Shown here: positions 45 through 21,770 of the stretch, one piece after another
Numbering within the stretch: position 1 is the first letter of the stretch
Layout: the number at the start of each line of letters is the position of its first letter
Source of the DNA: Macrostomum lignano
Taxonomy: Eukaryota
Direction: 5' to 3'
Assembly: GCA_002269645.1 (NCBI GenBank)
Contig: NIVC01005189.1
Span: 1 to 22,649 of the forward strand
DNA length: 22,649 nucleotides
Program-made: the position numbers and the translations under genes
Notes under the pieces: generated by a model
What the model was told of the DNA's origin: nothing
Database searches by the model: none
The model's input: the letters and a program-made list of their open reading frames with translations, nothing else

Positions 45-3000
45 GAAGTCAACAAAGGAGTGTACAGCGGCGGCGCCTGGAGCGGCAGCGGCAATCGGAT
101 TGACTCCATCTGTCCGGCTAAGGTAGAAAAATTGCCTCAGTAGTTGAAGGCACCCCGGAAGATTATAACAAACTGATTGAGGCGGCCCGGGCCGCTTGGC
201 CAGCCTGGGCGAGAGACCACGCCACCGGCTAGGGGAGAGATTGTTCGCCAGATTGGCGACAATCTGCGCAAAAATCTGCAACTACTTGGCAAGCTGGTGT
301 CGCTTGAAATGGGAAAAATCTGCCCGAAGGGGTGGGCGAAGTGCAGGAAGTTGTTGACATTTGCGATTACGGTGTTGGATTGTCCAGGACGTTGAGCGGC
401 CAGGTGAGGACCATCTGAAGCGAACCTGGCGGTTCTAAGGACCTGTTGGCGTTGGCGTTTTGAGGACCTAGTGGGGATCTGAGGACCTAGTGGGGTCCTG
501 AGGATCTAGTAGGGTCCTGTCCGGAGGACGTAGTGGGTCCTGACCTGAGGACGTAGTGGAGTCCTGACCTGAGGACGTAGTGGGGTCCTGACCTGAGGAC
601 GTAGTGGGTCCTGAGAACCTATTGGGGTCCTGACCTGAGGACCTAGTGAAGTCCTGACCTGAGGACGTAGTGGGGTCCTGGGAACCTATTGGGGTCCTGA
701 CCTGAGGACCTATTGGGGTCCTGACCTGAGGACCTATTGGGGTCCTGACCTGAGGACCTAGTGAAGTCCTGACCTGAGGACCTAGTGGGGTCCTGTCCTG
801 AGGACGTAGTGGGGTCCTGACCTGAGGACGTAGTGGGGTCCTTACCTGAGGACCTATTGGGGTCCTGACCTGAGGACGTAGTGGGGTCCTGGGGACCTAG
901 TGGGTCCTGACCTGAGGACGTAGTGGGTTCCTGGGGACCTAGTGGGTCCTGACCTGAGGACGTAGTGGGTCCTGACCTGAGGACCTATTGGGGTCCTGAC
1001 CTGAGGATCTAGTGGGGTCCTGAGGACCTAGTGGGGTCCTGACCTGAGGACGTAGTGGGGTCCTGACCTGAGGACCTATTGGGGTCTGACCTGAGGATCT
1101 AGTGGGGTCCTGAGGACCTAGTGGGGTCCTGACCTGAAGACCTAGTGGGATTCTGAGGACCTGGCGGGTTCTAAAACCAACTGACCACCTGGGGATGTTT
1201 CGGGTTCAGTAGAGTGCTAAATGAATGATCAGATAGGAACTGTAATTAATTAGTTATTATTATACAGTAATGTCTCAGATAGAGTAGGAGTAATATGAAT
1301 CAGTTAAAACTTTAATGCATCACATCGTTCTTGCAGGCAGCTTAATACTAGATGGTCAGTTGGTTTCGTTGAATTTTAAAACATACCACAAAGCGAAATA
1401 AAATTTCAAGGTGGTTACCTAGCAAATCTGTGGGGGTTAGATGGGTGAATATCTTAGAAGCAGACTGCTGTACAGTGGGTGTGGTCTATTACCCGAGTTT
1501 GTGTATAGCAGCAAGCGTTGGAAAGAAACTCGCTTTTCTTTCCGGTCGAAAATTTCTCTTACCCCACAGTGCTAGCGGTTGTGTCCAGGGCGGTTGAAAT
1601 ACCGAGCGTACACTGCAGGCCTGGGGTTTTCAGTGACGAATGCCGAAAGAAGGTTGATAAGCCATCTGAAAACGAATTAAAGTACTCGTTGGTAGTCAAA
1701 ACAGTTTACGCAACAAACTACTTTCTTATCATTTATCAGTAGTATGCTGTGATTAAAATTTGAGTTTTTGTGCGAACTAATTAGGTGACGAGGCGTTAAA
1801 GCATTTACTCCCGAATTAAACGACTAGTAATCAGTGTACTAATTAGATGACGAGGCGGTGCCATAGTCATGTTTACTCCCGCCTTTTACCCAGTAAAAGA
1901 GCACAATAAATGCATTGAATTTTACCAGGTGCTACCATCCGAGCGCCCAATCACTCTCTAATGGAAGTGTGGAATCCACTGGGCGTCATCGGAGTCATCA
2001 CCGCTTTCAACTTTCCCTGTGCCGTGTTTGGCTGGAACTTCAGCCTGTCAGCCGTGTGCGGCAATTGCACAGTGTGGAAGGGCGCCCCCAGCACGCCGCT
2101 GACTACCCTGGCTGTCACCAGAGTTGTAGCTGAAGTGTTCGAACGGAATGGCGTCCCGCCCGGCGTCCTGTCAGCCATCTGCGCCGGGGCCGACGTTGGA
2201 GCCGCGATGGCGGCTGACGAGCGACTGCCACTGGTGTCCTTTACCGGCAGCTGCGCCGTAGGGCGCGAGGTCAGGCTGCGCGGGGTTAAGGATGCCAAAC
2301 TGGGGGGGGGGAGGTCAAGGGTCTCAAACTTGGGTGGGGAGGTCAAGGGTGCCAAACTTGGGTGGGGAGGTCAAGGGTGCCAAACTTGGGTAAGGAGGTC
2401 AATGGTGCCAAACTGGGGATGGGGGTCAGAGGTGCCAAATTCAGGGGGCTCAGGGTGCCAAAAGGGGGGGTTAAGGGTGTTAAGCTTGGAAGGGAGGTCA
2501 AAGGTGCCTAACTTGAGTGGAGGTCAATGGTGCCTATCTTGGGAGGAGGTCAAGGGTGCCAAACTGGGGGGGGGGTCAGGGTGCCAAACTCGGAAGGTCA
2601 AGAGTACCAAACTTAGAGGGGGGGGTCAAAAATGCCAAACTCGATGGAGTCAACGGTGTCAAACGTAAGGGGAGGTCAAGGGTGCCAAACTTGAGGGGGA
2701 GATCAAGAGTGCCAAATTCAGGGAGGGTCAGGCAAGCTTTAGAGGGGTGCAATGCAAAACTTTAAGGGGGTCAGGGTGCCAAACTTCAGGGGAGGTCAAG
2801 GGTGCCAAACTTCAGGGGAGGTCAAGGGTGCCAAACTGTAGCTAAACTGGTTCAGCTGTGCCAATTTTTTCTCATTAAATATGGCCAGATTGCTAATAAT
2901 GCGCCCCTCAGGTTGCGGTGACTGTGGCTGGCAGATTCGGCCGCAGTCTGCTCGAACTGGCGGCAACAATGCCATCCTGGTGAACGCCGATGCGGATCTG

Positions 3001-3218
3001 GACATGGTTGTGCAGTCAGCCGTCTTCGCCTGCGCCGGCACCGCCGGTCAGCGCTGCACCTCAACCAGGCGGCTGGTGTTGCACAGCTCCTTGCACGATC
3101 AGGTCGTATCCCGGCTGGGCAAGGCGCTGGAGTCGCTCATGGCCAAGGCTGGCGATCCTGTTGAACAGGGCGTGCTGTACGGCCCGCTACACTCGCCTGC
3201 CTCCGTGGAAAAGTGAGT

Positions 3219-3267
<49 letters not shown>

Positions 3268-3388
3268 TCTGTCTGACTGTCTGTCTGTCTGTCTGTCTTT
3301 CTGTCTTTCTGCAGTCTGTCTGTCTGTCTGTCTTTCTGTCTCAGTGTCTGTCTGTCTTTCTGTCTGTCTGTCTGTCTGTCTGTCTCAG

Positions 3389-3440
<52 letters not shown>

Positions 3441-3572
3441 AGGTGTCTGTCTGTCTGTCTTTCTGTCTTTCTGTCTGTCTGCAGTCTGTCTGTCTGTCTG
3501 TCTGTCTGTCTCAGTGTCTGTCTGTCTTTCTGTCTGTCTGTCTGTCTGTCTGTCTCAGTGTCTGTCTGTCTT

Positions 3573-3611
<39 letters not shown>

Positions 3612-3614
3612 CAG

Positions 3615-3647
<33 letters not shown>

Positions 3648-3684
3648 CAGTGTCTGTCTGTCTGTCTCAGTGTCTGTCTGTCTT

Positions 3685-3734
<50 letters not shown>

Positions 3735-5207
3735 AGGGTGTCTGTCTGTCAATTTGTCAGTCTGTCCATCAGTCCATATCTACCACGCGCACCAGATACG
3801 AGTCGGCACTCGGCAGTGGCCCGGGCCCAGGCGGAGGGCGGCCAGATCGTGTTCGGCGGCAAGCGAATCGCTCGGCTGTCCAGCAGCGGCGGCTACTTCG
3901 TCGAGCCGACCCTGATCACCGGGCTGAAGCCGGACTCGCCGCTGGTGCAAGAGAAGACTTTCGCTCCGATTGTGTACGCGCTCAAGTGCGACTCGCTTGA
4001 CGAGGCTATTCGGATTAATAATTCGGTAAATTTTTTGTTTACTATCTGCGCTTATTTACTATGGACTACTGATTTCACTGGTAGAATTTGATAGACTCAA
4101 ATCTCAAGTGGAAATAGTTAGAGATTAATTGGGATGCAGTGAGGTGAATGCACATTAGAAAGTGAGAATATTAGAACAGGAAGTTTAATTTGGTCGAGTG
4201 AGATTGGAAGAGAATGAGATTGGTAGGGAGTGAGATTGGTAGTGTGAGATGGGTAGAGTGAGAATATACGAGGTAGAGTGTGAGATTGGTGGAGAGTGTG
4301 ATTTTGGTAGAGAGTGTGATTTTGGTAGAGAGTGTGATTTTGGTAGACTGAGATTGGTAGAGTATGAGATTATAGTAGAGTGTGAGATTAGTATAGTGTG
4401 AGATTAGTGGAGTGTGAGATTGGTACAGTGAGATTAGTGGAGTGTGAGATTGGTAGAGAGTGAGATTGGTACAGTGAGATTGGTAGAGAGTGAGATTGGT
4501 AAGGAGGAGATTGGTTGAGTGAGATTGGTAGAGTGAGATTGGTTGAGTGAGATTGGTAGAGAGTGAGATTGGTTGTGTGAGATTGGTAGAGTGAGATTGG
4601 TTGAGTGAGATTGGTTGAGTGAGATTGGTTGAGTGAGATTGGTTGAGAGAGATTGGTTGAGTGAGATTGGTTGAGTGAGATTAGTAGAGTGAGATTGGTT
4701 GAGTGAGATTGGTAGAGAGTGAGATTGGTTGAGTGAGATTAGTAGAGTGAGATTGGTTGAGTGAGATTGGTTGAGTGAGATTGGTTGAGTGAGATTAGTA
4801 GAGTGAGATTGGTTGAGTGAGATTGGTAGAGAGTGAGATTGGTTGAGTGAGATTGGTTGAGTAAGATTGTTTGAGTGAGATTGGTAGAGTGAGATTACCA
4901 GTAGCAGATCTCCAGCCTCAGCCGCTAAACTCCCTCAGGTGAAGCAGGGCCTGTCATCCAGTTTATTCACCGGGACCTCAGCAACCTGTTCCGCTGGATC
5001 GGGCCTCGCGGCTCCGACTGCGGCCTCGTCAACGTCAATATACCGACGTCTGGCGCCGAGATTGGCGGCGCTTTCGGCGGCGAGAAGCACACTGGCGGAG
5101 GCCGGGAGTCTGGCAGCGACGCGTGGAAGCAGTACATGCGACGGAGCACCTGCACTATCAACTATGGCAAGGACCTGCCGCTGGCTCAGGGCATCAAGTT
5201 TGAGTAG
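45..5207 (+). CDS. ALDH7A1: Aldehyde dehydrogenase family 7 member A1 (antiquitin / alpha-aminoadipic semialdehyde dehydrogenase), 5'-partial, 5 exons in window, interrupted by 7 frameshifts (sequencing error or pseudogene)
   Basis: Exons 45-403, 1929-2269, 2912-3212, 3796-4025, 4939-5207, all bounded by AG/GT. Translation gives ALDH7 signatures: [66 protein letters not shown] (catalytic Glu), GTAGQRCT (catalytic Cys), [66 protein letters not shown]. Frame changes are needed near 121, 212, 320, 1947, 2959, 3810 and 4970. Confidence 0.93.
435..1172 (+). repeat. Intronic minisatellite, 19/24-bp unit (ctgac)ctgaggac[c/g]ta[g/t]tggggtc, ALDH7A1 intron 1
   Basis: Visible tandem array of about 30 variant units starting about 30 nt after the donor at 404. 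Confidence 0.92.
2283..2837 (+). repeat. Intronic G-rich minisatellite, ~24-28-bp unit gggaggtcaagggtgccaaactt(g)n, ALDH7A1 intron 2
   Basis: About 20 degenerate units fill nearly all of the 642-bp intron 2270-2911. Confidence 0.9.
3219..3767 (+). repeat. (TCTG)n microsatellite with recurrent variant units, ALDH7A1 intron 3
   Basis: Starts 6 nt after donor gtgagt at 3213; recurring interruptions tctcagtg, tctttctg, tctgcag. Confidence 0.97.
4190..4896 (+). repeat. Intronic minisatellite, 14-16-bp unit gagtgagattggtt / gagtgagattggta(ga), ALDH7A1 intron 4
   Basis: Array is degenerate at its 5' side and homogeneous at its 3' side. Confidence 0.93.
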
Positions 5208-5450
5208 GCTGGCTTCTAGCTCGTAGTTTTGCTGCGCGGTTCAATATCGTCAAGTTGTTTGATGGATTGAATTCAATTTTTTGACTGGCTTCGATTTTTT
5301 GTGTAAGGAAATCTTTGTTTACATTTTTTACAATACGATCGTATTCTGCCTATACTACTATCGAATTCAGGGTTGCTTCATCTTAATCAATGTAAGTGTT
5401 AAAACATTTCCTCATATAAATCAGCTTTTCTCCCATCCCAAACTTTTCAT

Positions 5451-5690
5451 ATCTAATCGCCCCTGTTCCCGTATCTAATCTCCCCTGTTCCCGTATCTAA
5501 TCTCCCCTATTCCCGTATCTAATCTCCCCTGTTCCCGTATCTAATCTCCCCTATTCCCGTATCTAATCTCCCCTGTTCCCGTATCTAATCTCCCCTGTTC
5601 CCGTATCTAATCTCCCCTGTTCCCGTATCTAATCTCCCCTGTTCCCGTATCTAATCTCCCCTGTTCCCGTATCTAATCTCCCCTGTTCCC
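5451..5690 (+). repeat. 22-bp tandem repeat ccctgttcccgtatctaatctc (~11 copies) downstream of the ALDH7A1 stop
   Basis: Units start at 5461, 5483, 5505 and so on, nearly identical (g/a variant at one site). Confidence 0.95.
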
Positions 5691-6212
5691 AATAATCTAA
5701 TCCAATCTGATATATCCAATATGAACAAAAATAGTTCTTCCCATTATTTCGTGTATTAATTATGAACAATTGTCCGGTCAATCATAATGCCATGTTTATC
5801 ACACCATTGTCATTCGCTTCCCTGCATCGGTGATCGAAATCAATTATTTATTATTTTCTCCATAAAACTAATTTTTCAATTTCATTTTTTCTACAAGCAT
5901 CGCATGTTATGCATTATCTAACCTTTAGCTTACTACTTTGAATTTAGCTAATTAGTAGTATGTAGACTAACCCGATAGCTAATTCACAATATTTTCATAA
6001 GCACGAGCGGTTGTTATTTTCGCAAATTATTTTATATGGTTCTGTATGCCAATAAGAAACGTATATCATTTTGAGTAATATATTTCTACCAATACTGATA
6101 ATAAAGTTGAACTCATTCTTGCATGCTTTTCTGCTCAGTTAAAAAGCAAACTGCAATTCCGCGTTGTCTTCATTTCTATCGGTTCGCTTCGTTTAGTTGT
6201 CACGAAAGATTT

Positions 6213-7191
6213 GTGAGGCCCGCTTGCCCTCTTCCCTTCCCCTCTTCCCTTCCTCTCTTCCCTTCCCCTCTTCTCTTCCCCTCTTCCCTTCCCCTCTTCT
6301 CTTGCCCTCTTCTCTTCCTCTCTTCTCTTCCCCTCTTCCCTTCCCCTCTTCTCTTGCCACCTCTTCCCCTCTTCTCTTCCCCTCTTCTCTTCCCCTCTTC
6401 TCTTGCCCTCTTCTCTTCCCCTCTTCCCTTCCCCTCTTCCCTTCCCCTCTTCCCTTCCCCTCTTCTCTTCCCCTCTTCCCTTCCCCTCTTCTCTTGCCCT
6501 CTTCTCTTCCTCTCTTCTCTTCCCCTCTTCCCTTCCCCTCTTCTCTTGCCACCTCTTCCCCTCTTCCCTTCCCCTCTTCTCTTGCCCTCTTCTCTTGCCC
6601 TCTTCTCTTCCCCTCTTCTCTTCCCCTCTTCTCTTGCCCTCTTCTCTTCCCCTCTTCTCTTCCCCTCTTCTCTTGCCCTCTTCTCTTCCCCTCTTCTCTT
6701 GCCCTCTTCTCTTCCTCTCTTCTCTTCCCCTCTTCCCTTCCCCTCTTCTCTTGCCCTCTTCCCTTCCCCTCTTCTCTTGCCCTCTTCTCTTCCTCTCTTC
6801 TCTTCCCCTCTTCTCTTGCCCTCTACTCTTGCCCTCTTCTCTTCCCCTCTTTCTTCTCTTCCCCTCTTTCTTCTCTTCCCCTCTTTCTTCTCTTCCCCTC
6901 TTTCTTCTCTTCCCCTCTTCTCTTCCCCCTCTCTTCCCCTCTTCTCTTGCCCCCTTCTCTTGCCATCTTCTATTCCCCTCTTCTCTTGCCCTCTACTCTT
7001 GCCCTCTTCTCTTGCCCTCTTCTTCCCCAAGTATTCATCAAATGCGCAACTTAACCGAAATATCTGGGGTCCGTTTTCAATCTGTCTTCCCCCTTACCTA
7101 CTGCAGACTAATTTTACTGAAAATAGGCAGTTCTTGAAGACCCAGTTTTTCTGTAGTTAAAATGCAACACTTCTTTAATTTCTCTTTCAAG
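6213..7191 (+). other. Putative 5'-UTR intron of the Aurora kinase gene
   Basis: Donor-like tt|gtgagg at 6213 (same gtgagg donor as at 404 and 9055). Pyrimidine-rich acceptor ttctttaatttctctttcaag| at 7191, 9 nt before ATG 7201. No transcript evidence. Confidence 0.45.
6223..7027 (+). repeat. ~800-bp polypyrimidine/polypurine array, ~13-bp unit [c/g]ccctcttctctt
   Basis: Almost exclusively C/T on the + strand. It is the source of the spurious PSSLPLF and REEGKR ORFs. Confidence 0.95.
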
Positions 7192-7200
7192 ACTTTGGAA

Positions 7201-9865
7201 ATGTCGTCTTCGTCAGCGCTGTCATCGGTGGAGAACCAGCTGAACAATCAGCAGCCTCTGTCGCCACAAGTCTCCGGCGTCCAAACTCGAATGTCGAAAA
7301 TCTCCGACTTCGACATCGGCTGCCCGCTCGGCAAGGGCAAGTTCGGCAATGTGTATTTAGCCAAGGAGAAGAAGCACGATTTCCTGGTTGCTCTGAAGAT
7401 TCTGTTTAAAAGTCAGTTGGTCAAAGGTCGGATGGAGCACCAGCTTCATCGCGAGATTGAGATTATGAGTCATCTGAGGCATCCGCATATTCTGCAGCTC
7501 TATACAATGTTTTACGATCAGAAGCGCATCTACTTGGTGCTTGAGTACGCCTTTCGAGGCCAGATGTACTCCCTGCTCACCAGGATGGGCCGCTTCAGCG
7601 AGCGGAGGTCCGCCACCTACATGTACCAGCTAGCTGATGCCCTGGCCTTCTGTCATAGCAAGCAGGTCATTCACAGGGGTGAGTGAGAATCTCATGTAGC
7701 CAGATCTATTCTCATGGGTGAGAATCTCATGTAGTCAAATCTATTCTCATGTGTGAGAATCTCGTGTAGCCAGATCTATTCTCACGGGTGAGAATCTCGT
7801 GTAGCCAGATCTATTCTCATGAGTGAGAATCCCATGTAGCCAGATCTATTCTCATGGGTGAGAATCCCATGTAGTCAAATCTATTCTCATGTGTGAGAAT
7901 CTCGTGTAGCCAGATCTATTCTCACGGGTGAGAATCTCGTGTAGCCAGATCTGTTCTCATGAGTGAGAATCCCATGTAGCCAGATCTATTCTCATGGGTG
8001 AGAATCTCATGTAGTCAAATCTATTCTCATGTGTGAGAATCTCGTGTAGCCAGATCTATTCTCATGAGTGAGAATCCCATGTAGCCAGACCTATTCTCAT
8101 GAGTGAGAATCGCATGTAGCCAGACCTATTCTCATGGGTGAGAATCCCATGTATCCAAATATATTATTATGGGTGAGAATCTCATGTAGTCAAATCTATT
8201 CTCATGGGTGAGAATCTCGTGTAGCCAGATCTATTCTCATGGGTGAGAATCTCGTGTAGCCAGATCTATTCTCATGGGTGAGAATCTCATGTAGTCAAAT
8301 CTATTCTCATGTGTGAGAATCTCGTGTAGCCAGATCTATTCTCACGGGTGAGAATCTCGTGTAGCCAGATCTATTCTCATGAGTGAGAATCCCATGTAGC
8401 CAGATCTATTCTCATGGGTGAGAATCCCATGTAGTCAAATCTATTCTCATGTGTGAGAATCTCGTGTAGCCAGATCTATTCTCACGGGTGAGAATCTCGT
8501 GTAGCCAGATCTGTTCTCATGAGTGAGAATCCCATGTAGCCAGATCTATTCTCATGGGTGAGAATCTCATGTAGTCAAATCTATTCTCATGTGTGAGAAT
8601 CTCGTGTAGCCAGATCTATTCTCACGGGTGAGAATCTCGTGTAGCCAGATCTATTCTCATGAGTGAGAATCCCATGTAGCCAGATCTATTCTCATGGGTG
8701 AGAATCCAGTGCAGTTAGAACAGAGTCGAACCCCCGCTGCCCCATCGCAGACATCAAGCCGGAGAACCTGCTGCTGGGATTCTATTACGAGCTGAAGCTC
8801 GCCGACTTCGGCTGGTCAGTGCACGCGCCATCGCAGCGGAGGCGAACCCTGTGCGGCACCCTGGACTACCTGCCGCCAGAGATGGTCACAGGGGTCACCC
8901 ACGATGAAGGCGTCGACGTCTGGACGATGGGCGTCCTCTGCTACGAGATGCTGCACGGCTCGCCACCGTTCGAGGACGAAGATGAGCATGGGACCCAAAA
9001 ACGAATCGCTATGGTGGACTTCACCTTCCCCGAGCACATCTCTCCTCTGGCCAGGTGAGGCGGTTAGGAGGGGACAGTTTTGTCGTTTTCCGTTGCTTAC
9101 CGGTTTTTTTTTATGATTATTATTCTAATGTCAAATCTCATGAACCCACTTGCCGCCTCAAATGCCACTCCAATCTCATAAATCCCACTCCCCATCTCAT
9201 AAATCCCACTCCCCATCTCATAAATCCCACTCCCCATCTCATAAACCCCACTTCTAATCTCATGAATTAGTTTAGTTGGATAAATATTGTTTAAAGCGTG
9301 GATAAAGTTGGATATATCCTACTTTCCATCTCATAAATCTCAATTCCCATCTCGTAAATCTTACTTCCCATCTCAAAATCTCACCCACCACCTCATAAAT
9401 CTCACTTCCCGTCATAAATCTCACTTCCTATCTCATAAATCTCTCACTTCCCATTTCATAAATCTCACCCACCATCTCTAAATCTCACTTCCTATCACAT
9501 AGATCCCACTATCATCTCATAAATGTCACTTCTCATCTCAACTCTGAATTAACTCCCAAGCTTGCACTTTTGACATTAGAAAATTCCAATTATTTACGCC
9601 CCCTATATCTTTTATATATTGATTCCCATAAAAAACTGTTGCCATCAGAGACCTGATCAGCCGCATTCTGCGCAAGCGCTCCAAGGACCGCATCAGCCTC
9701 CAGGACATCCAGTGCCACCCGTGGATTGAACAGCACGCTACAAAATCTGTAGACACGAACCCCAGCCATCTGGAGTCTTACCTGCGCGAGGATTTCAATC
9801 GGACGATGAATGAAGAGTCCAAGGCTCTGCTGACCGACTGCACTGCTGAGAGTCACGGAGAGTGA
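7201..9865 (+). CDS. Aurora family Ser/Thr kinase (Aurora B-like), 3 coding exons, 332 aa
   Basis: Exons 7201-7678, 8751-9054, 9649-9865 join in frame (999 nt). Motifs: [24 protein letters not shown]|DIKPEN (split by a phase-1 intron), [34 protein letters not shown] (RxxL D-box), HPWI. The A/B/C orthology is not settled, so no symbol is given. Confidence 0.95.
7683..8707 (+). repeat. 35-bp tandem repeat (29 full copies + partial) gtgagaatc[t/c]c[a/g]tgtagccagatctattctcatgg, Aurora intron 1, with 4-unit higher-order structure
   Basis: gtgagaat recurs at 7683, 7718, 7753 and onward at an exact 35-nt period, with no spacers. Confidence 0.97.
9150..9541 (+). repeat. Degenerate ~21-bp tandem repeat aaatc[c/t]cact(t)cccatctcat, Aurora intron 2
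   Basis: Clean copies at ~9170-9260, degenerate copies at ~9320-9541. Confidence 0.8.
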
Positions 9866-13409: not shown

Positions 13410-15761
13410 TCACAGCAGATTGAGCTGCGCCATGTAAACTCTGCGCAAGATTGTCTGACAGTCCGCGAACACTCGCCTAATGTTCTCCGTGTCCACGGCT
13501 GTTGTGTAGTGCGGATAGCATCTGCGCTGCCCGTCGCCTTGGGCGATGGCCTGGAACTTGTCCCGCACGAAGCTCTTGGCCCTGGTCAGCTCCGGCTCCT
13601 CCTTGGGATTCTCTGAGTCCGGCCCCGGCTGAGGGTAGTTTTTGTACTCTTCGAAGAAGTCTTCCAGTTTCGTCTTTCCTTTAAGAATTTTTTCCTGCAA
13701 AGCAAAACCAAAATAAAAATTAGGGAAACAGCTTTTTTGGCCAAAATGTGTGCTCGTCTGGTGTGTTTTACTACACTATTACCTCCTATTTTGAACGAAC
13801 TCCCTTTGTACTCAAACAAGCGGACATCATTTCAGAGACTGGTACATAGGTTCTTTTCAATTCCTGAACGCGTTTAACTCGAAAATCAACTCCTATGCAA
13901 AAGGAAGATAATCGAAAGAGACAGATCGTTTTCAAATCAAACGTGATGGCTGAGTCCGTGAGCGGAGACATATAGAGGAAGAAGTGCGAGACGAACTGCT
14001 TGATGAGGAAGGCAAAGACTGGACAGAGGAATATAAGTCAATTGTTTGCCGTTTGATTTGATATGTTCTTCTTGTGTTAGCTGATACTGCGAGCGTACCA
14101 GTTTGTCTATGGTCCCACTTAGTAATATATAATAGCTAGCACCTGCTGAACTCATCCATTGCCCTTGCCTTTCGTGTCAACCGTCCAGCAAGGTGACCTA
14201 CATTTAGTAGCTTACTACAAGCCAAATGCCGACACCCCGTGCTCCCAGGCGAAGTTCCTAATGACCGACCGACACTTACAGAGACATAACAAAGTTATTG
14301 TTTGTTAATGATAGTTATGATAATACGCGCATACTTAAGAGATCATAGACTTTAGACTTGCCCATAGACACTCTGCTCTGGCTGAATTAAAAAGGTTATG
14401 TTCATGGATAAAGGAATATCATGGAATGCTCATCTGATATAATCTAGGGTCAATTTGCCTGATGAAAGTTAATAATAATTTTGGGCTGGTGAGAAGTCCA
14501 TAGGCGACAGCTCGGTGCATTATTTGGCTTTTGCACTTGCAAGCATGACTAGCGGCTGGGATGCATCTGACAGACTGACTCAGCAGCAAATTAATCCTAC
14601 GGGGGGTATTTTTAACTTTCATCAGCCAGCAGTTTCCAACGGGGTGTAAATTTCAAGTAGAAAATCAACCTAAACAACATCCTTACGTCTGCATCAGTGT
14701 CTGAATGGATGTTCCGTTTCTTTGAATAAATATGAAGCTTGTTCAAAAAAGTAGGTAAAAAAGGTTTTAGTAACCAGTAATTAATTACCTGGAAGGTGTC
14801 CTGTTTATTTAGAAACAGGATAACCGAATTCTGCTTCAGATAACGATTGTTCCAAATAGTACGAAAGAGCTCAATTGACTCTTTTAGCCGATTCTGAGTC
14901 GGGTCCTCGCGCAATCTCGAATCGTAGCCAGAGCAAGCGCAGACGAAAATTACCGCGGTGATGTCGTGAAACACCTGCAAGTCGAATGCCAAAAAAATTC
15001 TGTCACTCTCTAAATACAGAAATCACTCTATGGCTCCCAATTTGTCTCACCTGAATCCACTTGCGTCGCTCCTCTCTCTGTCCACCCACGTCAAACATGT
15101 GAAACATCACCTTTTCGACTGTGAACTTGGTCTCGAAGATGCCCGACGTGAGGACTCGACAGCGCAGGATGTCCTGCTCGTCCGGGAGGTACTCCGGCTT
15201 GGCCACCTCTGCGCACTTGTCCAGAAACCATTTTGCTGAGTCGATCAGCTGGTATTCGTTGGATCGACTAAATGCCTCTTGAACGCCTTTGTCCTTCCAC
15301 AATGTGCAGCAGTATTCAAAGAATTTTTCCGGATAGTCGAAGTCCTTTGCGGTAGACTCGTTTTGCACGTAGTCAACGTACTCCTGGTACTCGGGGTGCT
15401 CCAGCTGCACTGGCGGATTCAGGTTGGGCATGGCACCGGTGATTGATAGCATACCGTCGCGAATGTTTCGCCGAATGTCTGGCACCTTCTCCCGTCGAGC
15501 CGAGTCATCGTAGCCCGTCAAATAGAGGATCTGCATCTGCTTGATCAGCGTGGACTTGCCGGACTCTCCGGCGCCCACCACGGGTATTTTATGCGTCATG
15601 GCGTGCTGCTTCTTCTCCTGCTTCAGCTTCTTCTCAATATCGTCCTTTCGCTCCTTCGCCTTGTCTTTGCCGGCCGACTTTGCCATCTTTCCCGAGCCGG
15701 GTACCTTGCCGTTGGCAACCTCGCCATCGCCGTCTTTGGTTTTGGGCCGGAAGCAGCTCAT
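13410..15761 (-). CDS. Heterotrimeric G protein alpha subunit, Gs family, divergent paralog; 3 coding exons, 393 aa
   Basis: Exons 15761-15051, 14974-14789, 13694-13410, all phase 0 and GT-AG. Motifs: [33 protein letters not shown] (Gs Arg201 equivalent), [67 protein letters not shown] and [11 protein letters not shown] are Gs-class signatures. Start taken as MSCF at 15761; the track's 15851 start is a TTG. Confidence 0.93.
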
Positions 15762-17158
15762 CGTGACGGCCAGTTGCTGGCAGTAAAACTTCCGGGCCTT
15801 AAGGGTCTCGGGGGAAGCCGCAGAAGGGGACCTACAGTAATTCGATGACAATTCGTTCTGTGCAGAGAAATTCTGTTCGGTTATGTATAGCTGCTGTCAC
15901 TTTTTCCTTTTCTGCGCTACTGATAAACTGTCTTCTCAGCCTACCTATTTTGGATGGAATGGCACAGTTAGCAGTCTTGGTTAAAAAAATTGAGCTTTTT
16001 TTTCCTAGCAGAATGTTGGAATTTGCCACTCTGTATCTTTGCTTCGCTATTTTCTTTCTTTTTCTTCTCTTTATTTTTCTCTCTCCTCACCCAGTCGAAC
16101 CCAACCTGCTCACAGTTGCAGTACTGGCAGAGTTTGTGCGTGCTCTGGTGCCACACTCCATCCCAGACTCCCCATGCGCTTCATCGTCCTTTCTAGCTCT
16201 TTCTTTCGCTCAAGTCTGGGCGGGAGTAGTAGAATGCCACTTCGTGCTGTGAGACTCACGATCGCGCATCATGACCATCGTTGACCGCACGTCGTTGTTG
16301 CGCCAACCTTCCCTGGTCTCTGTGTGCCAGAAGGCAACAATCCCTGCCGTACGTGTTTCAGTTTATTTTTAAGACAGATAGAGAGACGGAGGGGCAGAGG
16401 TGAGGGTTTAGCGTCTTGTTTACTCTGCAAATTTTGCTTTCTGCAACAATGCCAGCCGCAGCCTCACTCCACTCAAATATAGCCACCTCAACGCCGAAGC
16501 CCTCAGTTACTGTTACACTACTTATAATCACTCGCTCCGTCAGTGCGACTTGCGCTCAGTTGCAGCGGCTGCTCGACTCCAAGCATAGGTGCAAACAGTT
16601 ATTAAAGAAGTAGACCTAATTCCATCTCTCCCCAGTCTCCACACTGTTCATTGGTCCACAATTGACAACAAGGTACGATATTGCAAGTTCTATAGTCTCA
16701 GGCGGAGTCAGGCCCGCAACTCTTCAACTCTTCAGCAATGATGGAAAGTGGAAATAGGGCTAAAAACAACAATGAGAAATACTGGCTCGTATTATTTAAC
16801 TCTATTTTCGGGCATCCGAGCTTTTATAGAGAGGAAGAAATAACTTAAAATTCTGCATAGAGACGGCTTTTTATCGCGAAAAAATTGTGCAGTCATTTGC
16901 AGTCAGTTCATTGCCTGGGTCTCTGCATCTGCTCTAGACTCCAGCCTCAAACCGCATCTCTGTAGCACCCGTCACAGACTATTTTTGTCACTAAGACGGG
17001 ACGGGCAGATATTCACTAGTACGCAACTTTCTAAGGTTAATTAAACTGGCTCTGAAAAAACTGCAGTTGGCAGTCAACATTGGGTTTGAAGTGCAATGTG
17101 AAGTTTGTTATGCTTTTTTATCCTGGCTCCAGTTACCTAGGACCGATTCTAGGTGTCC

Positions 17159-17534
<376 letters not shown>

Positions 17535-17956
17535 AATTCGTGTCTTTAATTCATCACGAAAAAAGGGTGCTTGCTTTTAAATTATTTTGCAATACATTTC
17601 AGTTTCCATATATTTCAGCTTAAATGGATAAGCGTATAAATACTTTGATTTACTGTATAGTTTTTGAAAATTAGTCAATATATGTTTTTTGATTCGGAAT
17701 TTCACAAACAGAACAGTAAAACATTCCGAAAAAATTTTGTTTGTTAAAATGATTCAGTTTAGTTTTGATGAATTCATGACGTTTAGCATTGAGTGACTGA
17801 ATTTAGGTATGAAACTCCACCAGATTGGACAAATGAAGAGCAGGCAAACGCTGAAAATATCGCTCATAATTTTAATGAATTTCTAGTAGTAACCTAGTGC
17901 TTCATGAAATTCAATTGAATTCAGTTGCAAGCACTAAAAAGCATTCCAGGCTGCAA

Positions 17957-20900
17957 CTAAGTGACGTAAACTCCAGTCGCATCGAAAGCCTGAAAATTTG
18001 AGCACAATTATAACTCAGCCGATAAATATTTGTTATGTTGTACAGTAGTGCAAGTTACCTGCTCTGCAGAATCCCCTGTGTACTGATTTCCCATCCGCTG
18101 CATCTTCAACACCTCCTGGCCTGCCTTCGGAGGCTGCGGTCGGCAGGTTTTGTTGAACAACTTGCAGGCGAGGCCCAGCAAAGCAGTGCTTGCGACAGCG
18201 GCTAATGAAGATGCAGCACATAGAAGAGGCCGCTCCCAGACTCTTGCCAGCCTGCTGCCTGGTGATGGTTAGGAAATTTTATTGAGATTGAGCAGATTTT
18301 TCTGCGCATCAAATTGCTGTCACCGAACTCACCAGTATCAGGTTCGGGCAGCCGGAGCAGTGCGAATGTACCGTTGAACAAACGGCACCTAATAACCGAG
18401 CCTGCGATGGCAGACGGCTGTCGAAACACCGCCACGAACTGTGACGTCACTGAGCTGAGACAGCGCGAACCGCGAGGCCTCGATGCTTCCTATAAAGTTT
18501 CGAATATTTCGATCAGAAACTACATAAACAATCTGCTGAACAAACAATAAACAAACAAACAAACCATAAACACAGAGTTTAGGTTAGGATTTAGGCTAGG
18601 TATTAGGCCAGGTATCAGGTTAGGGTTTAAGTTAGGGTTGGAGCTTGGCTTTGTAGGGGTAGGTCGGCAGTCAATTGACGCACACTTCCTGCTCAATCAA
18701 ATCTTCAATTTTAACAACGCATTCTATGAGGCAACAAAACAACTTTGAAATCATCTGAAGTTGTCTATAGTATTAACTTCTAGACACAGACACCCACATG
18801 GAATTTAATCAGCACGAACCCGCTTCATCAGTGTCACTACTAGCGAGCTGTCATTGCTGGCCGTCCTCAGCTCGCACCTGTGTGTCGCACTGGGACAGGC
18901 TGACTCGGACACTGCACGGAACTGAATGACTCCGGTGAGGTGCCACAGCTCAGCTTGGATCACGTCAATCAATATGTGCTCTGGATCAGCTGTTAAATTC
19001 AAATAGTCGCCAAAAGTTTGTTTAAATTTGACAATTCAATTTACAATTACAACAGAACGTAAAATTTATACCTTTTGGAACGGAGACTGATTGAGCCAGA
19101 TTAGCCATGTCGTATCCATCAAATTTACAGGTGATAGTTCTGTAGCAGCTTTGGGCTCGGGGTATCGCTCCAAGAAACTTGTATGTAGTTGATGAAGATC
19201 TTGAGAGACTGCTGCCTATCAACTGCATGCGAATTTTCTCAGACCCGCCTCCACAGTCGCGATGCAGTCGACAATTTGCTGATGGAGTATTGTCGACGGA
19301 AGTTACCGACACAGCGAAGGAAGGACCAGCTGCACTGCTAGTCGTCCATTTCGAGAGATCCCACCGGATATCCGGAGCGTCTGAGTGGGAAAATATTGAA
19401 GCCTTATCGCCTCCTTTTCTTACCATTGATAATAATAATAACAATAATAATTGATTATATCTGCCCCAATCGGGCCAGATGTGCAACCGACAGCTCAGCC
19501 GCAGCTATTGCGCGGCGCTTCTGAAGGCTGCGTACGGCTGTTCAGTCCAAGGACTGTGGGGGGGGGGGTCGCCACACAATTTTCTCAGCTAATGCTGGCA
19601 CCCATTTTACAGCTGAGTGAACTGAAGCAATGCAGAGTTAAGTGTCTTGCTCAACGACACAAATTGTTCCGATTGGGTCGAGAGTCGAACCTCCGACCTT
19701 CAAATCACGAGTCAGACGCTCTAATCACTAGGCTACAACCCGCTTCTATATATTGATAAAGTAACCAGGGCATCAATATAAGGGCAATATGTTCTCTTTA
19801 CAGGAATGATTATTAAAATTTGTCACAGTTTGTGCTTGATTAGTTAAAACAAATTGTTATATAGACTAGGCAGTTGGCACTCACGGTTTTTAGTTAAGCG
19901 AAAGTCAAGTCGGTAGACTGAATTTACGAAAGCTAAGATGACACTGTGGTTGAACTGAAGCTGATAGCTAGGACTCTGGCCATGAACGATGTACCGGTAT
20001 AATTCAGGAAAACTGCTGTTTGGAACAGTGCCGTTAAAAATTCTGACACTGCCATACCGGTAACTGTTGCGATTTTCATCAATACGAGTTATTCTGATTT
20101 TTAACAAGAAGTTCTGGGGAACAACAAGGCTATAATATGTTCTGTAGCGGCGCTGTAACCGACGCAAAAACACCGCGGACTGAAACTGTGGATGAGTGGT
20201 CCGACTGCCGCTCTTCTGCCTGATGACTTCCGTAGCACCTGAGAAATGCAAGCGAGTATTCTTTGTTTGTTACCACCGAAATTGATGAGCATGCTATAGG
20301 AAAGCATTGAATGTGCCCTTACCTGGTATTGTTTGATTGCTTGTCTCATAGGTAAGCCGGAATCCCTGATCAGTGATGGAGCGGTCAATGACAAATCGAA
20401 TAACTACGGGACCGGTGAGCCAGAACTCTGATTGCAGCGAGTCGGGGCTGTTTACCCTAAAACTTTCTTCGTCACTGTTTAAATATGTCGTTATTCTCTC
20501 ATAGATTCGAACACTGTCGCAGCAGCGTCGAAGTTGCAGTCGACTGAATTTGATAATCACAGACAGATTCGAGTCGATGGTCCACATGATTCCAAAGTTG
20601 CTGTCGTAAACTTTACCAATCGTGTCCAAACCGCCCGGTAGATAGGAAACGACTCCAGACTTTGAGCTCAGAATAGAACGGCTCTCTTTTGCAGCTGTTA
20701 AAAATAATAAAATGATCAAGCACTCAACCCTTCTCAAGCAGTAGCCATTCCCTTTAAAACACCACAGCTCACTTACTTATACTGAATTTAAACTCAAATC
20801 CAGGTCTGACTACTCCAGAATCAGTCGAAAAAATGAAGGTGACACTGTGCTGAAACTTATAGAAAGGTAAGCTGAGGCTTCGATTGCCGGATAACTCCAG

Positions 20901-21770
20901 CATTGCATAACGGTTTTGATGCGGTATCAGACCACGATAAGTATTTAGTTTGTCACTCCATTGTTGTGTAATAAATTTAGTAAATTGAACCAAAACTTCA
21001 TAGTTAGAAGGCACGAATATGCTCCAGCATTTTCGGTAGTTATTGGCATAGTCTTCATCCCCAGGGTGGCTCTTTCTGACGCCAATATTTTGTCTGATGA
21101 TCTCAGCGGCGGCTGCAAATCGTTTGGAAGCAAACCAATACGTTATTCGTCTCTTAGAGCAAATATTTACAGCTCAGCAAGTTCAGCAAGGTAAAGTGTG
21201 GATTCAACAGTTAAAAGCTAAAATACAAAATTTTGTCTTTTCAAATGAGTAGTTAAATTTGTAATCAGCTAGTATCTTACCCGGAATCGATTCACTCCGA
21301 GTCTGGTAATTAAGCTCGAATCCAGTTCCCGTACGAGAGCCACCAGTCCTCTGAAACCTCACAACGAACGGTGCAGTCAGCCATAACTCGGAGTCAATGA
21401 CGTCAGAGTACCTTAGCCTGAACCTCTCCGTGCTCTCTAAGGCTGAGCTGGTATTTTCATAAATTGAAACTCTGTCACAGCAACTATTCACATCGAGCTT
21501 GGTGAACTTGATCATCTTCACTCCGCTTGATTGCACAGTCCAGGACACACTCATGTAGCTTGAGCTGGACTGGCATGAAATCGTTCCGCTAGGTGAGTAG
21601 ACAGTGCCTCCTGAGCAGGAAGCTGCAATACCAAAGTGAAATACTAATTATTTCTTTAATATTCGATCGGAAATGTGTAAAGTTTGACCAGCAAGATTTT
21701 AATTACCAGCAGCTAGTTGTAGCCTGAATATTAAAGTAAGAATGGCAATGTAGCAGGTGGCTGCTTGCAT
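17957..21770 (-). CDS. Predicted type I membrane glycoprotein: signal peptide + 4 degenerate CUB domains + 2 degenerate Ig-like domains + TM + short cytoplasmic tail; 10 exons, 778 aa
   Basis: Exons (minus): 21770-21707, 21622-21281, 21112-20777, 20694-20323, 20238-19885, 19380-19072, 18989-18820, 18489-18333, 18258-18059, 17989-17957. They sum to 2337 nt with no stop and compatible phases (domain exons are phase 1-1); six of the nine introns are 69-84 nt. Signal peptide MQAATCYIAILTLIFRLQLAAA. CUB-like patterns: CSGG..GTI..W...IKF...CCD.V.IY...VRF...GF.L.Y and SHP...YANNY.CWSI.VP...V.F..F...TDSG...GF. TM LLCAASSLAAVASTALLGLAC followed by KLFNK. The donor at 18819 (gttcgt) and the last exon are the least certain. 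Confidence 0.75.
18579..18640 (+). repeat. Short degenerate TTAGG(G)-like tract in a CUB-Ig gene intron
   Basis: ttaggttaggatttaggctaggtattaggccaggtatcaggttagggtttaagttagggttgg; only two perfect TTAGGG. Confidence 0.45.
19428..19748 (-). mobile_element. tRNA-derived CORE-domain (MIR-like) SINE with (TTA)n tail, in intron 5 of the CUB-Ig gene
   Basis: On the minus strand: A-box-like tagcctagtgattag (19735-19721) and B-box ggttcgactc (19691-19682). On the + strand, cccattttacagctgagtgaactgaagcaatgcagagttaagtgtcttgctcaa (19601-19654) closely resembles the MIR CORE pattern cccattttacagatgaggaaactgagg...gaggttaagtgacttgcccaa (recalled, not searched). Simple-repeat tail at 19428-19452. Confidence 0.8.

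Follow-up and report, generated by a model that had tools for sequence, protein, structure and literature searches.

Architecture of a ten-exon gene on the minus strand

Within the window, the whole 22,649-nucleotide stretch of DNA analysed here, we identified a spliced gene of ten minus-strand exons (21770..17957). Independent rebuilding of the gene model gave a coding sequence of 2337 nt, translating into 778 aa and terminating at a TAG stop at 17959-17957, and thereby reproduced exactly the end points and length claimed in an earlier note on this DNA, which had described ten exons splicing in frame. All nine introns of the gene are bounded by GT..AG with correct phases, and every extracellular module corresponds to one exon or exon pair flanked by phase-1 introns. 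The features, in the order of transcription, are:

21707..21770, minus strand: exon 1, ATG (21770) and hydrophobic leader MQAATCYIAILTLIFRLQLAA, donor in phase 1 (hydropathy 1.73 for residues 6-24)
21281..21622, minus strand: exon 2, CUB1, CUBa subtype with a vicinal CC-D motif, phase 1-1 (assigned by paralogy to CUB3)
20777..21112, minus strand: exon 3, CUB2, CUBb subtype, phase 1-1 (Pfam CUB E 3.9e-7, 30.8 bits, cutoff 21.4)
20323..20694, minus strand: exon 4, CUB3, CUBa subtype, phase 1-1 (homologous to CUB1; sub-cutoff Pfam CUB match, E 0.0034)
19885..20238, minus strand: exon 5, CUB4, CUBb subtype, phase 1-1, more degenerate than the other three (assigned by paralogy to CUB2)
19476..19742, minus strand: tRNA-derived SINE within intron 5, outside the protein but marking the source lineage (Rfam tRNA, 31.5 bits at 19673-19742)
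19072..19380, minus strand: exon 6, module X, predicted Ig-like domain 1, about 102 aa, C-x5-C ... C-x5-C, phase 1-1 (AlphaFold2 and Foldseek)
18820..18989, minus strand: exon 7, first half of module Y, predicted Ig-like domain 2, phase 1 in and 0 out (family alignment)
18333..18489, minus strand: exon 8, second half of module Y, phase 0 in and 1 out (family alignment)
18059..18258, minus strand: exon 9, juxtamembrane RLARVWERPLL, predicted TM helix near residues 713-733 and the bulk of the tail (hydropathy maximum 1.94 at residue 713)
17957..17989, minus strand: exon 10, last ten residues AFDATGVYVT and TAG stop (gene model)
17871..17876, minus strand: candidate polyadenylation signal ATTAAA, 81 nt past the stop (pattern only)

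With stop trinucleotides taken at the frequency seen in the introns of this gene (0.066), the probability of 779 open codons arising by chance is about 1e-23, and that of an open frame in a single CUB exon about 3e-4. The exons are also richer in GC than the introns (48.7% versus 38.0%). Since both the open frame and the match of the spliced product to a predicted Macrostomum lignano protein, described below, are far beyond chance, we conclude that this macrostomid flatworm locus is a real gene, intact and coding for a protein. For the neighbouring G-alpha gene the best match reaches only 54% identity and none comes from M. lignano, so that the window probably stems from a different macrostomid or an assembly that lacks annotation. 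An exact look-up in a collection of 15 billion proteins returned no entry for the 778-aa protein, and exon 4, used as a query, identified no protein in the searched collection that contained it. The gene had been called hidden, but its absence from the prokaryote-style ORF track means only that a track of that kind cannot display spliced eukaryotic genes.

The signal peptide and TM calls were made by hydropathy alone, and strongly hydrophobic 19-residue windows were confined to residues 3-26 (the leader) and 712-736 (the TM helix). The leader lacks a basic n-region, and its h-region contains an Arg; in the M. lignano paralogue the leader likewise occupies its own exon with a phase-1 end. Beyond about residue 733 lies a tail of approximately 45 aa. 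Nine N-glycosylation sequons are found in the ectodomain (NTS, NRS, NLS, NQT, NGT, NSS, NHS, NDS and NGT), while a tenth, NKT, is located in the cytoplasmic tail. We favour the view, on balance, that the encoded product is a single-pass type I membrane glycoprotein, with its topology in vivo deduced from these features. Its modules would follow one another as leader, two CUBa-CUBb pairs, Ig-like X and Y, a single TM helix and, on the cytoplasmic side, a tail of 45 aa with TGVYVT at its end. A Pfam search with the whole protein returned CUB only, with no LDLa, EGF, protease, catalytic or other domain. The architecture originally proposed, a signal peptide, four CUB and two Ig-like domains, a TM helix and a short tail of 45 aa, is therefore borne out, the Ig-like part at the level of predicted fold only, as are the nine ectodomain sequons, all of which we located in the rebuilt protein, and the lack of LDLa, EGF and protease modules.

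Two alternating CUB subtypes with incomplete Ca2+ sites

The whole protein matches the Pfam CUB family (PF00431) with an E-value of 4.4e-12. CUB2 passes the cutoff by itself and CUB3 is a weak match, while CUB1 and CUB4, neither of which gave a Pfam match when exon 2 or exon 5 was searched alone, are tied to the superfamily via paralogy only: CUB1 shares 40% identity with CUB3 (tblastn E 4e-21) and CUB4 shares 27% with CUB2 (tblastn E 6e-6). The earlier description of the domains as highly degenerate is upheld. CUB1 is additionally 58% identical to the CUBa domain of the M. lignano paralogue P0003. Judged by sequence, the four CUB domains are a duplicated CUBa-CUBb pair in which two subtypes alternate. 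A CUBa profile that took in exon 4 (CUB3) matched cubilin, PCPE-1, MASP and neuropilin CUB domains in the PDB over their full length, with E-values down to 1.2e-10, and a CUBb profile with CUB4 as its first row matched cubilin among the solved CUB structures at E 2e-15.

We then mapped the columns of the Ca2+ site onto MASP-1 and PCPE, taking this site to be the Glu/Asp/Asp triad of the C1s, MASP and cubilin structures. The acidic positions read N-D-G in CUB1, Q-D-D in CUB2, R-D-D in CUB3 and N-G-gap in CUB4, compared to E-D-D in both CUB domains of the M. lignano paralogues P0003 and P0010. The canonical Ca2+/ligand site (Tyr, Glu, Asp, Asp) is thus incomplete in all four CUB domains of the window protein, and the canonical cysteines are mostly gone from CUB2, CUB3 and CUB4. 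Because each of the four lacks at least one residue of the Glu/Asp/Asp site, they probably do not bind ligands in the classical Ca2+-dependent CUB mode. Instead of an altered binding mode, the lost cysteines and Ca2+-site residues could also reflect relaxed constraint.

A more far-reaching reading of these losses is that the gene is a decaying or non-functional paralogue, which has lost its expression or its need and whose frame is still open by happenstance. Such a history would fit the absence of a complete triad from all four CUB domains when the M. lignano paralogues retain it, the missing cysteines of CUB2, CUB3 and CUB4, the failure of CUB4 to match Pfam and the absence of the protein from the searched collection. 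However, it would have to accommodate 778 stop-free codons (P ~1e-23), nine GT-AG introns in correct phase, the strong conservation of the tail, the TM helix and the Y motif, and dN/dS values that are far smaller than 1 in CUB1, in Y and across the TM helix and tail. We therefore regard decay as quite improbable and continue to treat the gene as intact.

Modules X and Y are predicted to adopt Ig-like folds

Searched against Pfam, exon 6 and exons 7 and 8 combined returned nothing at E<=10, Ig families included, and an X-Y profile found nothing among PDB sequences at E<=1. We also obtained no BLASTP alignment between X and Y, which have no detectable sequence kinship to each other. At the level of predicted structure, the AlphaFold2 model of exon 6 (pLDDT 75, pTM 0.68) contains eight strands, and its best Foldseek matches were beta-2-microglobulin and the Ig domains of MHC class II (probability 1.00 at TM 0.5-0.6). 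For the X2-Y2 model of paralogue P0003 (pLDDT 78.6), Foldseek aligned about 230 columns with the two-domain chains of TCR, Fab and IgA Fc (probability 1.00, E 4e-5). These X and Y models were built from very shallow alignments of 4-7 sequences and have pLDDT values of 75-79 and modest Foldseek E-values of 1e-3 to 4e-5. X and Y thus resemble the immunoglobulin superfamily in the beta-sandwich fold of the predicted models and not in sequence, and we consider their assignment as Ig-like folds moderately secure.

Within module Y, exon 7 carries the family motif FRAVSExxCPxxxHRCELR and, with the family aligned, shares 56% identity with Y2 of P0003, and the intron separating exons 7 and 8 has the same position and phase in the M. 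lignano gene.

The predicted X module, and the predicted X-Y pair, share a seven- to eight-strand beta-sandwich with C1-set Ig domains, as found in beta-2-microglobulin, the membrane-proximal domains of MHC class II and the constant domains of TCRs and antibodies. Sequence similarity is absent, with 9-16% identity in structural alignments, and where C1-set domains have a single B-F Cys pair, X and Y have four cysteines each (C-x5-C ... C-x5-C in X; C-x6-C ... C ... C in Y). The resemblance would be one of fold, and common ancestry is not implied.

A short match between DVIQAELW and DVIDSELW had given rise to the idea that exons 6-8 encode a fifth and sixth degenerate CUB domain. We ruled this out, as the predicted folds match Ig domains and not CUB. 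Comparison of a CUB profile with hhalign gave probabilities of 0.1% for X and 2.8% for Y, and tblastn between the CUB and X/Y regions recovered an 8-residue match only (E about 2).

The gene belongs to a modular Macrostomum family

The best relative of the window protein is a 759-aa M. lignano protein, PAA76314.1 / A0A267FST9 (BOX15_Mlig014562g1; phmmer E 9e-169), which is annotated as a hypothetical or CUB domain-containing protein and has the variants A0A1I8GSH8, A0A1I8GTH3 and A0A1I8GA39. The term orphan, as used in the earlier note, is consequently no longer tenable, since clear M. lignano relatives are already public under such names. The lack of a full-length match to any characterised family is borne out; PAA76314.1 is itself uncharacterised.

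The two proteins share 38% identity overall and are colinear through CUBa-CUBb, X, Y, the TM helix and the tail. This colinearity spans every exon junction that has a counterpart, the exceptions being the CUB2-CUB3 and CUB3-CUB4 junctions, which have none in PAA76314.1 with its two CUB domains. Both genes encode a leader, a CUBa-CUBb pair, X, Y, a juxtamembrane VWERPLL, a TM helix and a terminal TGVYVT, and have introns at the same module boundaries in the same phases. In contrast to the window gene, with four CUB domains and one X-Y pair, PAA76314.1 has two CUB domains and two X-Y pairs; an extra intron splits its X, which in the window gene is a single exon, and it retains the full Tyr/Glu/Asp/Asp CUB site that the window copy has lost. 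Given that modules are exons bounded by phase-1 introns, these paralogues differ by duplication or loss of whole modules. The synteny check placed the M. lignano homologue in a different genomic neighbourhood, with a UQ_con gene upstream, so that it represents either a paralogue or a rearranged orthologue of the window gene.

The C-terminus is a further hallmark of the family, with TGVYVT being identical in the M. lignano paralogues. Together with KMQ and NQYxGxSA, both carried by exon 9, TGVYVT-COOH makes up the conserved motifs of a tail with 50% overall identity, and exon 9 aligns with the TM helix and tail of P0003 at 50% identity. A search of 1.84e9 representative proteins with the CUBa profile gave 169 matches at E<=1e-3, the top ones all from M. 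lignano. Outside Macrostomum, the matches that we looked up showed generic CUB similarity only (cubilin-like, DMBT1-like and unnamed CUB arrays). The family relatives include Mlig033186, a secreted array of approximately 16 CUBa domains. The window protein has every feature of the unnamed CUBa-CUBb-X-Y-TM family typified by PAA76314.1, copy number of modules aside, and by this sequence evidence it is a member of a modular family so far found only in Macrostomum.

The relatives also bear on whether the model falsely fuses a secreted 4-CUB gene (exons 1-5) to a separate Ig-like/TM gene (exons 6-10) across intron 5. This intron is the longest of the gene (504 nt) and contains the SINE, which is 78% identical over 273 nt to M. 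lignano L001 19989-20244; secreted CUB-only relatives exist, and polycistronic, trans-spliced units have been reported for M. lignano (PMC5730564). Yet exon 5 ends and exon 6 begins in phase 1, their junction contains neither a stop nor a start codon, and exon 6 does not encode a separate leader peptide. Moreover, the M. lignano protein joins CUBb directly to X over a homologous phase-1 intron, and since the M. lignano annotation is an RNA-seq-based, genome-guided transcriptome assembly (PMC5730564), assembled transcripts support the joining of CUB to X-Y-TM exons in the paralogue. A fusion artefact is barely credible, and we retain the single ten-exon gene.

Where dN/dS against the paralogue could be estimated it was 0.26-0.47, with synonymous sites saturated in five of 11 comparisons. 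Selection is purifying on average, with synonymous sites near saturation. Divergence between paralogues is marked in internal modules (X 26-31% and CUB4 24-36% identity).

Proposed role at the cell surface

Taken together, we consider it somewhat probable that the window protein is an intact modular type I glycoprotein acting as a non-enzymatic cell-surface binding protein. It would serve as a co-receptor, auxiliary subunit or adhesion molecule devoid of enzymatic activity. The distal CUB array may bind a protein or glycan partner, and the two Ig-like modules could act as a stalk close to the membrane or offer a further surface for interaction. The tail, which is short and conserved, might recruit a cytosolic sorting or scaffolding partner and would not signal catalytically. 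Searches of the literature and supplements for Macrostomum CUB-family members provided nothing usable on expression or function.

A more specific proposal is that of a fast-evolving recognition receptor, either reproductive (sperm, female tract or seminal fluid) or for allorecognition, whose modules diversify under sexual or immune conflict and possibly pair with the secreted giant CUBa arrays. The restriction of the family to Macrostomum among the representative proteins searched, the variable module copy number and low X and CUB4 identity between paralogues, the loss of canonical CUB residues from the window copy and the existence of secreted relatives with ~16 CUBa domains are all consistent with it, and fast evolution of reproduction-related genes is reported in one published study (PMC7336406). 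However, the literature and supplements searched tie no family member to gonad, prostate or antrum, dN/dS is not above 1, and relative rates measured against P0010 exceed those of P0003 in CUB1 only. We therefore judge this role unlikely and prefer the broader reading as a non-enzymatic binding protein. It is distinctly unlikely that the window gene acts jointly with paralogues anchored by a TM helix and with the giant secreted CUBa arrays as a lineage-specific, exon-modular receptor-ligand recognition system (for instance for sperm-partner or self/non-self recognition), built on a hitherto undescribed pair of doubly disulfide-stapled Ig-like modules, X and Y, and on CUB domains binding in a non-Ca2+ mode.

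What is new here is a Macrostomum-restricted family with the module grammar (CUBa-CUBb)n-(X-Y)n-TM-TGVYVT, whose public database entries say no more than 'hypothetical' or 'CUB domain-containing', and two sequence-orphan modules, X and Y, that are predicted to be Ig-like. The main value lies in annotation and flatworm biology. Macrostomum flatworms are hermaphroditic, and regeneration, bioadhesion and sexual conflict are studied with the genus as a model. Should the family act in mating or tissue recognition, it would offer a tractable case of receptor diversification by phase-1 exon shuffling; otherwise it is another lineage-specific CUB/Ig surface protein of the kind common in invertebrate genomes.

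Comparison with known CUB systems

The CUB domains of cubilin, PCPE-1 and MASP/C1r/C1s are the best solved-structure matches to both CUB subtypes over their full length and share with them the common fold and core motifs. They bind ligands via a Ca2+ site (Glu, Asp and Asp, with Tyr), whereas this site is incomplete in the window CUBs. Neither Ig-like modules nor a TM helix occur in these proteins, which are secreted or have EGF or protease modules in addition.

Neuropilin is a type I co-receptor with tandem N-terminal CUB domains, a non-catalytic ectodomain, one TM helix and a tail of ~40 aa, in which the functional motif is the conserved extreme C-terminus, SEA, a PDZ ligand. In contrast to this SEA terminus, TGVYVT of the window protein departs from the class I PDZ consensus. 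Neuropilin-1 and -2 combine two CUB domains with two FA58C domains and a MAM domain, whereas the window protein has neither FA58C nor MAM in Pfam, and the similarity between neuropilin and window CUBs is generic (E 0.04 with a single sequence, 1e-5 with a profile).

NETO, LEV-10 and SOL-2 combine CUB with LDLa, for which the Pfam search of the window protein gave no match. The SOL-1 family resembles the window protein in layout, with four CUB domains and one TM helix and no LDLa, EGF or protease module (PMC9546428). SOL-1, an auxiliary subunit of AMPA-type glutamate receptors in C. elegans, Drosophila and Apis, is single-pass with four extracellular CUBs like the window protein, and like the Macrostomum family it is very divergent between lineages, with orthologues of different phyla sharing only 25-28% identity (PMC9546428). 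This layout would suit a SOL-1/NETO/LEV-10-type auxiliary subunit that tunes the gating or clustering of a ligand-gated channel, such as an AMPA-type glutamate receptor, and, given the divergence of the SOL-1 orthologues, weak similarity is not exclusionary. However, the named non-Macrostomum relatives that we looked up are cubilin-like and DMBT1-like and not SOL-1, so that these comparisons revealed no specific kinship in sequence with SOL-1, and the closest paralogue has two CUB domains only; unlike in SOL-1, the four-CUB count is not constant within the Macrostomum family. No Ig-like modules are described for SOL-1, compared to two (~210 aa) between CUB4 and the TM helix in the window protein, which, judged by SOL-1's published description, does not conform to an architecture of signal peptide, exactly four CUBs, TM helix and short tail. 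An identity as such a channel subunit is accordingly very improbable. The remark in the earlier note that no named family with four CUB plus two Ig-like domains was recognised is overstated as far as the four-CUB architecture goes, which SOL-1 represents under a name, although SOL-1 lacks the Ig-like modules. As a non-enzymatic auxiliary protein, SOL-1 is a possible functional analogue of the window protein.

Gene structure and predicted topology

We rebuilt the CUB gene independently from the ATG at 21770 on the minus strand, obtaining ten exons that stay in frame and a coding sequence of 2337 nt, with the stop at 17959-17957, which encodes 778 aa. The nine introns are all canonical GT..AG and range from 69 to 504 nt. 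The coordinates and length proposed in the earlier note were identical to ours, and its nine ectodomain sequons were all present as listed.

Exons of the CUB gene
21770-21707, minus, exon 1
21622-21281, minus, exon 2 (CUB1)
21112-20777, minus, exon 3 (CUB2)
20694-20323, minus, exon 4 (CUB3)
20238-19885, minus, exon 5 (CUB4)
19380-19072, minus, exon 6 (module X)
18989-18820, minus, exon 7 (module Y)
18489-18333, minus, exon 8 (module Y)
18258-18059, minus, exon 9
17989-17957, minus, exon 10

If stops occurred as often as in this gene's introns, 779 open codons would have a probability of about 1e-23, and each CUB exon one of about 3e-4; exon GC content lies 10.7 points above that of the introns, and an open frame arising by chance is excluded. 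Exons 2-6 are each phase 1-1, as are exons 7 and 8 jointly, an arrangement typical of extracellular modules spread by exon shuffling. Hydropathy windows revealed only two strongly hydrophobic stretches, an N-terminal leader (the predicted signal peptide) and residues about 713-733 (the predicted transmembrane helix), after which a cytoplasmic tail of 45 aa is predicted.

Two CUB subtypes alternate in the ectodomain

Pfam recognized only CUB in the 778-aa protein (E 4.4e-12 for the whole protein). Exon by exon, CUB2 passed alone and CUB3 was weak, while CUB1 and CUB4 searched singly gave no Pfam match. CUB1 resembles CUB3 (40% identity, E 4e-21; subtype CUBa) and CUB2 resembles CUB4 (27% identity, E 6e-6; subtype CUBb), so that two subtypes alternate and the array reflects a CUBa-CUBb pair duplicated in tandem. 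Profiles of each subtype, with the window exons included, matched solved CUB domains over their full length (E 1.2e-10 and 2e-15), among them those of cubilin, PCPE-1, MASPs, C1r/C1s and neuropilins, and all four modules of exons 2-5 are CUB domains.

The gene belongs to an unnamed Macrostomum family

An HMMER search of 1.84 billion representative proteins with a CUB1+CUB3 profile returned 169 matches at E<=1e-3, the top ones all from Macrostomum lignano, a free-living flatworm.

M. lignano proteins matched by the CUB1+CUB3 profile
A0A1I8JLF6 / Mlig033186, 2681 aa, giant secreted CUBa protein
A0A1I8GGR3, 1932 aa, giant secreted CUBa protein
PAA76314.1 (BOX15_Mlig014562g1), 759 aa, transmembrane-anchored paralogue

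The two giant proteins carry about 13-16 CUBa-type domains and a leader, without a transmembrane helix; only the membrane-anchored subfamily is closer to CUB1 and CUB3 of the window. Several shorter or partial proteins made up the other top M. lignano matches. Next came generic CUB arrays, namely cubilin-like proteins (hemichordate, cnidarian), DMBT1-like proteins (rays) and a hypothetical CUB-array protein (piranha), along with one protist protein, one bacterial protein and unnamed metagenome proteins.

The 778-aa model is colinear with PAA76314.1 (phmmer E 9e-169), with identities of 58% for CUBa, 53% for CUBb, 56% for Y and 50% for the transmembrane helix and tail, and both proteins have a juxtamembrane VWERPLL and a C-terminal TGVYVT. 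The module order is leader-(CUBa-CUBb)x2-X-Y-TM-tail in the window protein and leader-CUBa-CUBb-X-Y-X-Y-TM-tail in PAA76314.1. At the paralogue's locus (L001) these module boundaries are likewise marked by introns, every one of them in phase 1, and both genes have a phase-0 intron within Y and an intron before the last exon; the neighbourhoods of the two genes differ. The exact 778-aa protein was absent from the protein collection, where exon 4 also found no match. What the earlier note called an orphan thus belongs to a Macrostomum family that carries no name and has its proteins already public as hypothetical or CUB domain-containing.

Since M. lignano was annotated from a genome-guided transcriptome assembly based on RNA-seq (PMC5730564), the paralogue's assembled transcripts support the joining of CUB exons to the X-Y-TM exons; the concern raised in the earlier note, that these might not be spliced together, was not borne out in this indirect test. 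The homologous junction in the paralogue, together with the phase-1 continuity across intron 5, contradicts the view that two genes were wrongly fused at this SINE-bearing intron.

In addition, CUBb of PAA76314.1 (residues 159-247) matched Pfam PF23062, the M02D8_5-like third CUB domain (35.9 against a cutoff of 32 bits), with a weak match for window exon 3 (E 0.0046); a literature search on M02D8.5 found nothing. A0A1I8GSH8 (384 aa) and A0A1I8GTH3 (388 aa) resemble predictions in which exons of a close copy of Mlig014562 (L001 10001-14322) were skipped: CUBa passes straight into Y1, X2 and Y2 are each reduced to a half and joined, and the tail is shortened. They are probably annotation or splice-variant artefacts.

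Modules X and Y have a predicted Ig-like fold

Neither X nor Y matched Pfam at E<=10 or PDB sequences, even as a family profile, and neither could be linked to the CUB profile or to the other module. Within the set of proteins that the CUBa search had brought in, X and Y HMMs matched only the window model and four M. lignano proteins. A model of exon 6 was all-beta (pLDDT 75, pTM 0.68), and its best Foldseek matches were beta-2-microglobulin and MHC class II Ig domains (TM 0.5-0.6, probability 1.00). The X2-Y2 segment of PAA76314.1, whose identity to the window modules is 28% for X and 56-57% for Y, gave a model (pLDDT 78.6) matching two-domain Ig chains (TCR, Fab, IgA Fc) over about 230 columns (E 4e-5). 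For X-Y, a double disulfide linking strands B and F is also predicted. Because the underlying alignments are shallow (4-7 rows), the resemblance to the C1 set is tentative. The two Ig-like domains suggested earlier are therefore upheld as a predicted fold, but not as a sequence family.

Repeats and neighbouring genes

The window holds four genes in 22 kb, consistent with the mean gene length of roughly 5 kb in Macrostomum genomes (PMC10468722); this and the SINE that recurs at the M. lignano locus mark the window as macrostomid. The absence of the exact 778-aa protein, the unmatched exon 4 and the G-alpha search result suggest that it probably lies outside the annotated M. lignano proteome.

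Other features of the window
19476-19742, minus, tRNA-derived SINE within intron 5 of the CUB gene
18578-18636, degenerate telomere-like repeat (TTTAGGTTAGGT x 4.9, TTAGGG-like units) within intron 7
17154-17534, (TGTC)n microsatellite, about 96 units
14615-15896, minus, G-alpha (Gs-like) gene
9160-9540, 21-mer minisatellite arrays
7680-8707, 35/140-mer array
6223-7023, 13-mer array
5450-5690, 22-mer array
4190-4896, 14-mer array
3219-3766, (TCTG)n array
2284-2837, 26/28-mer array
479-1156, 24-mer array

The tRNA-like head of the SINE (19673-19742) attains the gathering score for tRNA in Rfam, ARAGORN called no tRNA on the element, and it is 78% identical to a copy near the paralogue (L001 19989-20244). 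The microsatellite sits between the CUB gene and the G-alpha gene, about 420 nt past the stop of the former. The first coding exon of the G-alpha gene is unusually long (297 aa). The best match of this gene is 54% identical, no database match of its helical domain exceeds 56% identity, and the search gave no M. lignano match, which would be odd for a window from that species. By eye, the aldehyde-dehydrogenase gene resembles ALDH7A1 and the protein-kinase gene resembles Aurora; Pfam gives Aldedh and Pkinase only. Their introns (479-9540) are crowded with the minisatellite arrays, which account for the extreme GC/AT skews in the composition profile.

Ligand sites and constraint

The canonical Ca2+/ligand site of CUB domains, as seen in structures of C1s, MASP and cubilin, comprises Glu, Asp, Asp and Tyr. 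Both CUBs of PAA76314.1 and of a further M. lignano paralogue (P0010) have the whole site, and each of the four window CUBs lacks part of it (N-D-G, Q-D-D, R-D-D and N-G-gap, CUB1 to CUB4 in order); most canonical cysteines are also missing from CUB2-4. This would reflect either a non-canonical, Ca2+-independent binding mode or relaxed constraint. Such degenerate sites might be expected of a decaying paralogue, but 778 open codons, the intactness of all nine introns and the conservation of the tail make that reading a poor fit. The gene is intact, and encodes a leader, a glycosylatable ectodomain of four CUB and two predicted Ig-like modules, a single transmembrane helix and a short tail.

Likely function and comparison with known systems

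The tail contains no catalytic domain, its motifs KMQ, NQYxGxSA and TGVYVT-COOH are kept across roughly 50% divergence, and dN/dS against the paralogue is 0.26-0.47 where estimable, with synonymous sites near saturation. From these observations we infer a non-enzymatic surface binding protein, which could act as an adhesion molecule, a co-receptor or an auxiliary subunit; a partner would be bound by the CUB array, and the tail may recruit a cytosolic sorting or scaffold factor. A fast-evolving recognition protein, as first proposed, is possible: lineage restriction, varying module number and very divergent internal modules all fit, and the secreted CUBa arrays are candidate partners. Neither expression nor selection gave evidence for it, and text and supplement searches on the M. 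lignano gene identifiers turned up nothing.

Surface proteins with CUB and Ig domains that are confined to one lineage are common among invertebrates, and this one is mechanistically unsurprising. As far as our searches show, the combination of CUBa-CUBb pairs, two sequence-novel predicted Ig-like modules, a transmembrane helix and a TGVYVT tail is undescribed, within the known kind of non-catalytic, single-pass CUB-domain receptors. SOL-1 has four CUB domains and a transmembrane helix (PMC9546428), and a SOL-1-type auxiliary subunit fits in outline; the extra Ig-like modules, the two-CUB paralogue and the list of matches do not fit. By its modules, the gene falls outside the neuropilin, NETO/LEV-10 and SOL-1 families, whose defining modules are absent or to which it adds extra ones. 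For the surface-binder reading, neuropilin and SOL-1/NETO serve as functional analogies rather than evident relatives.
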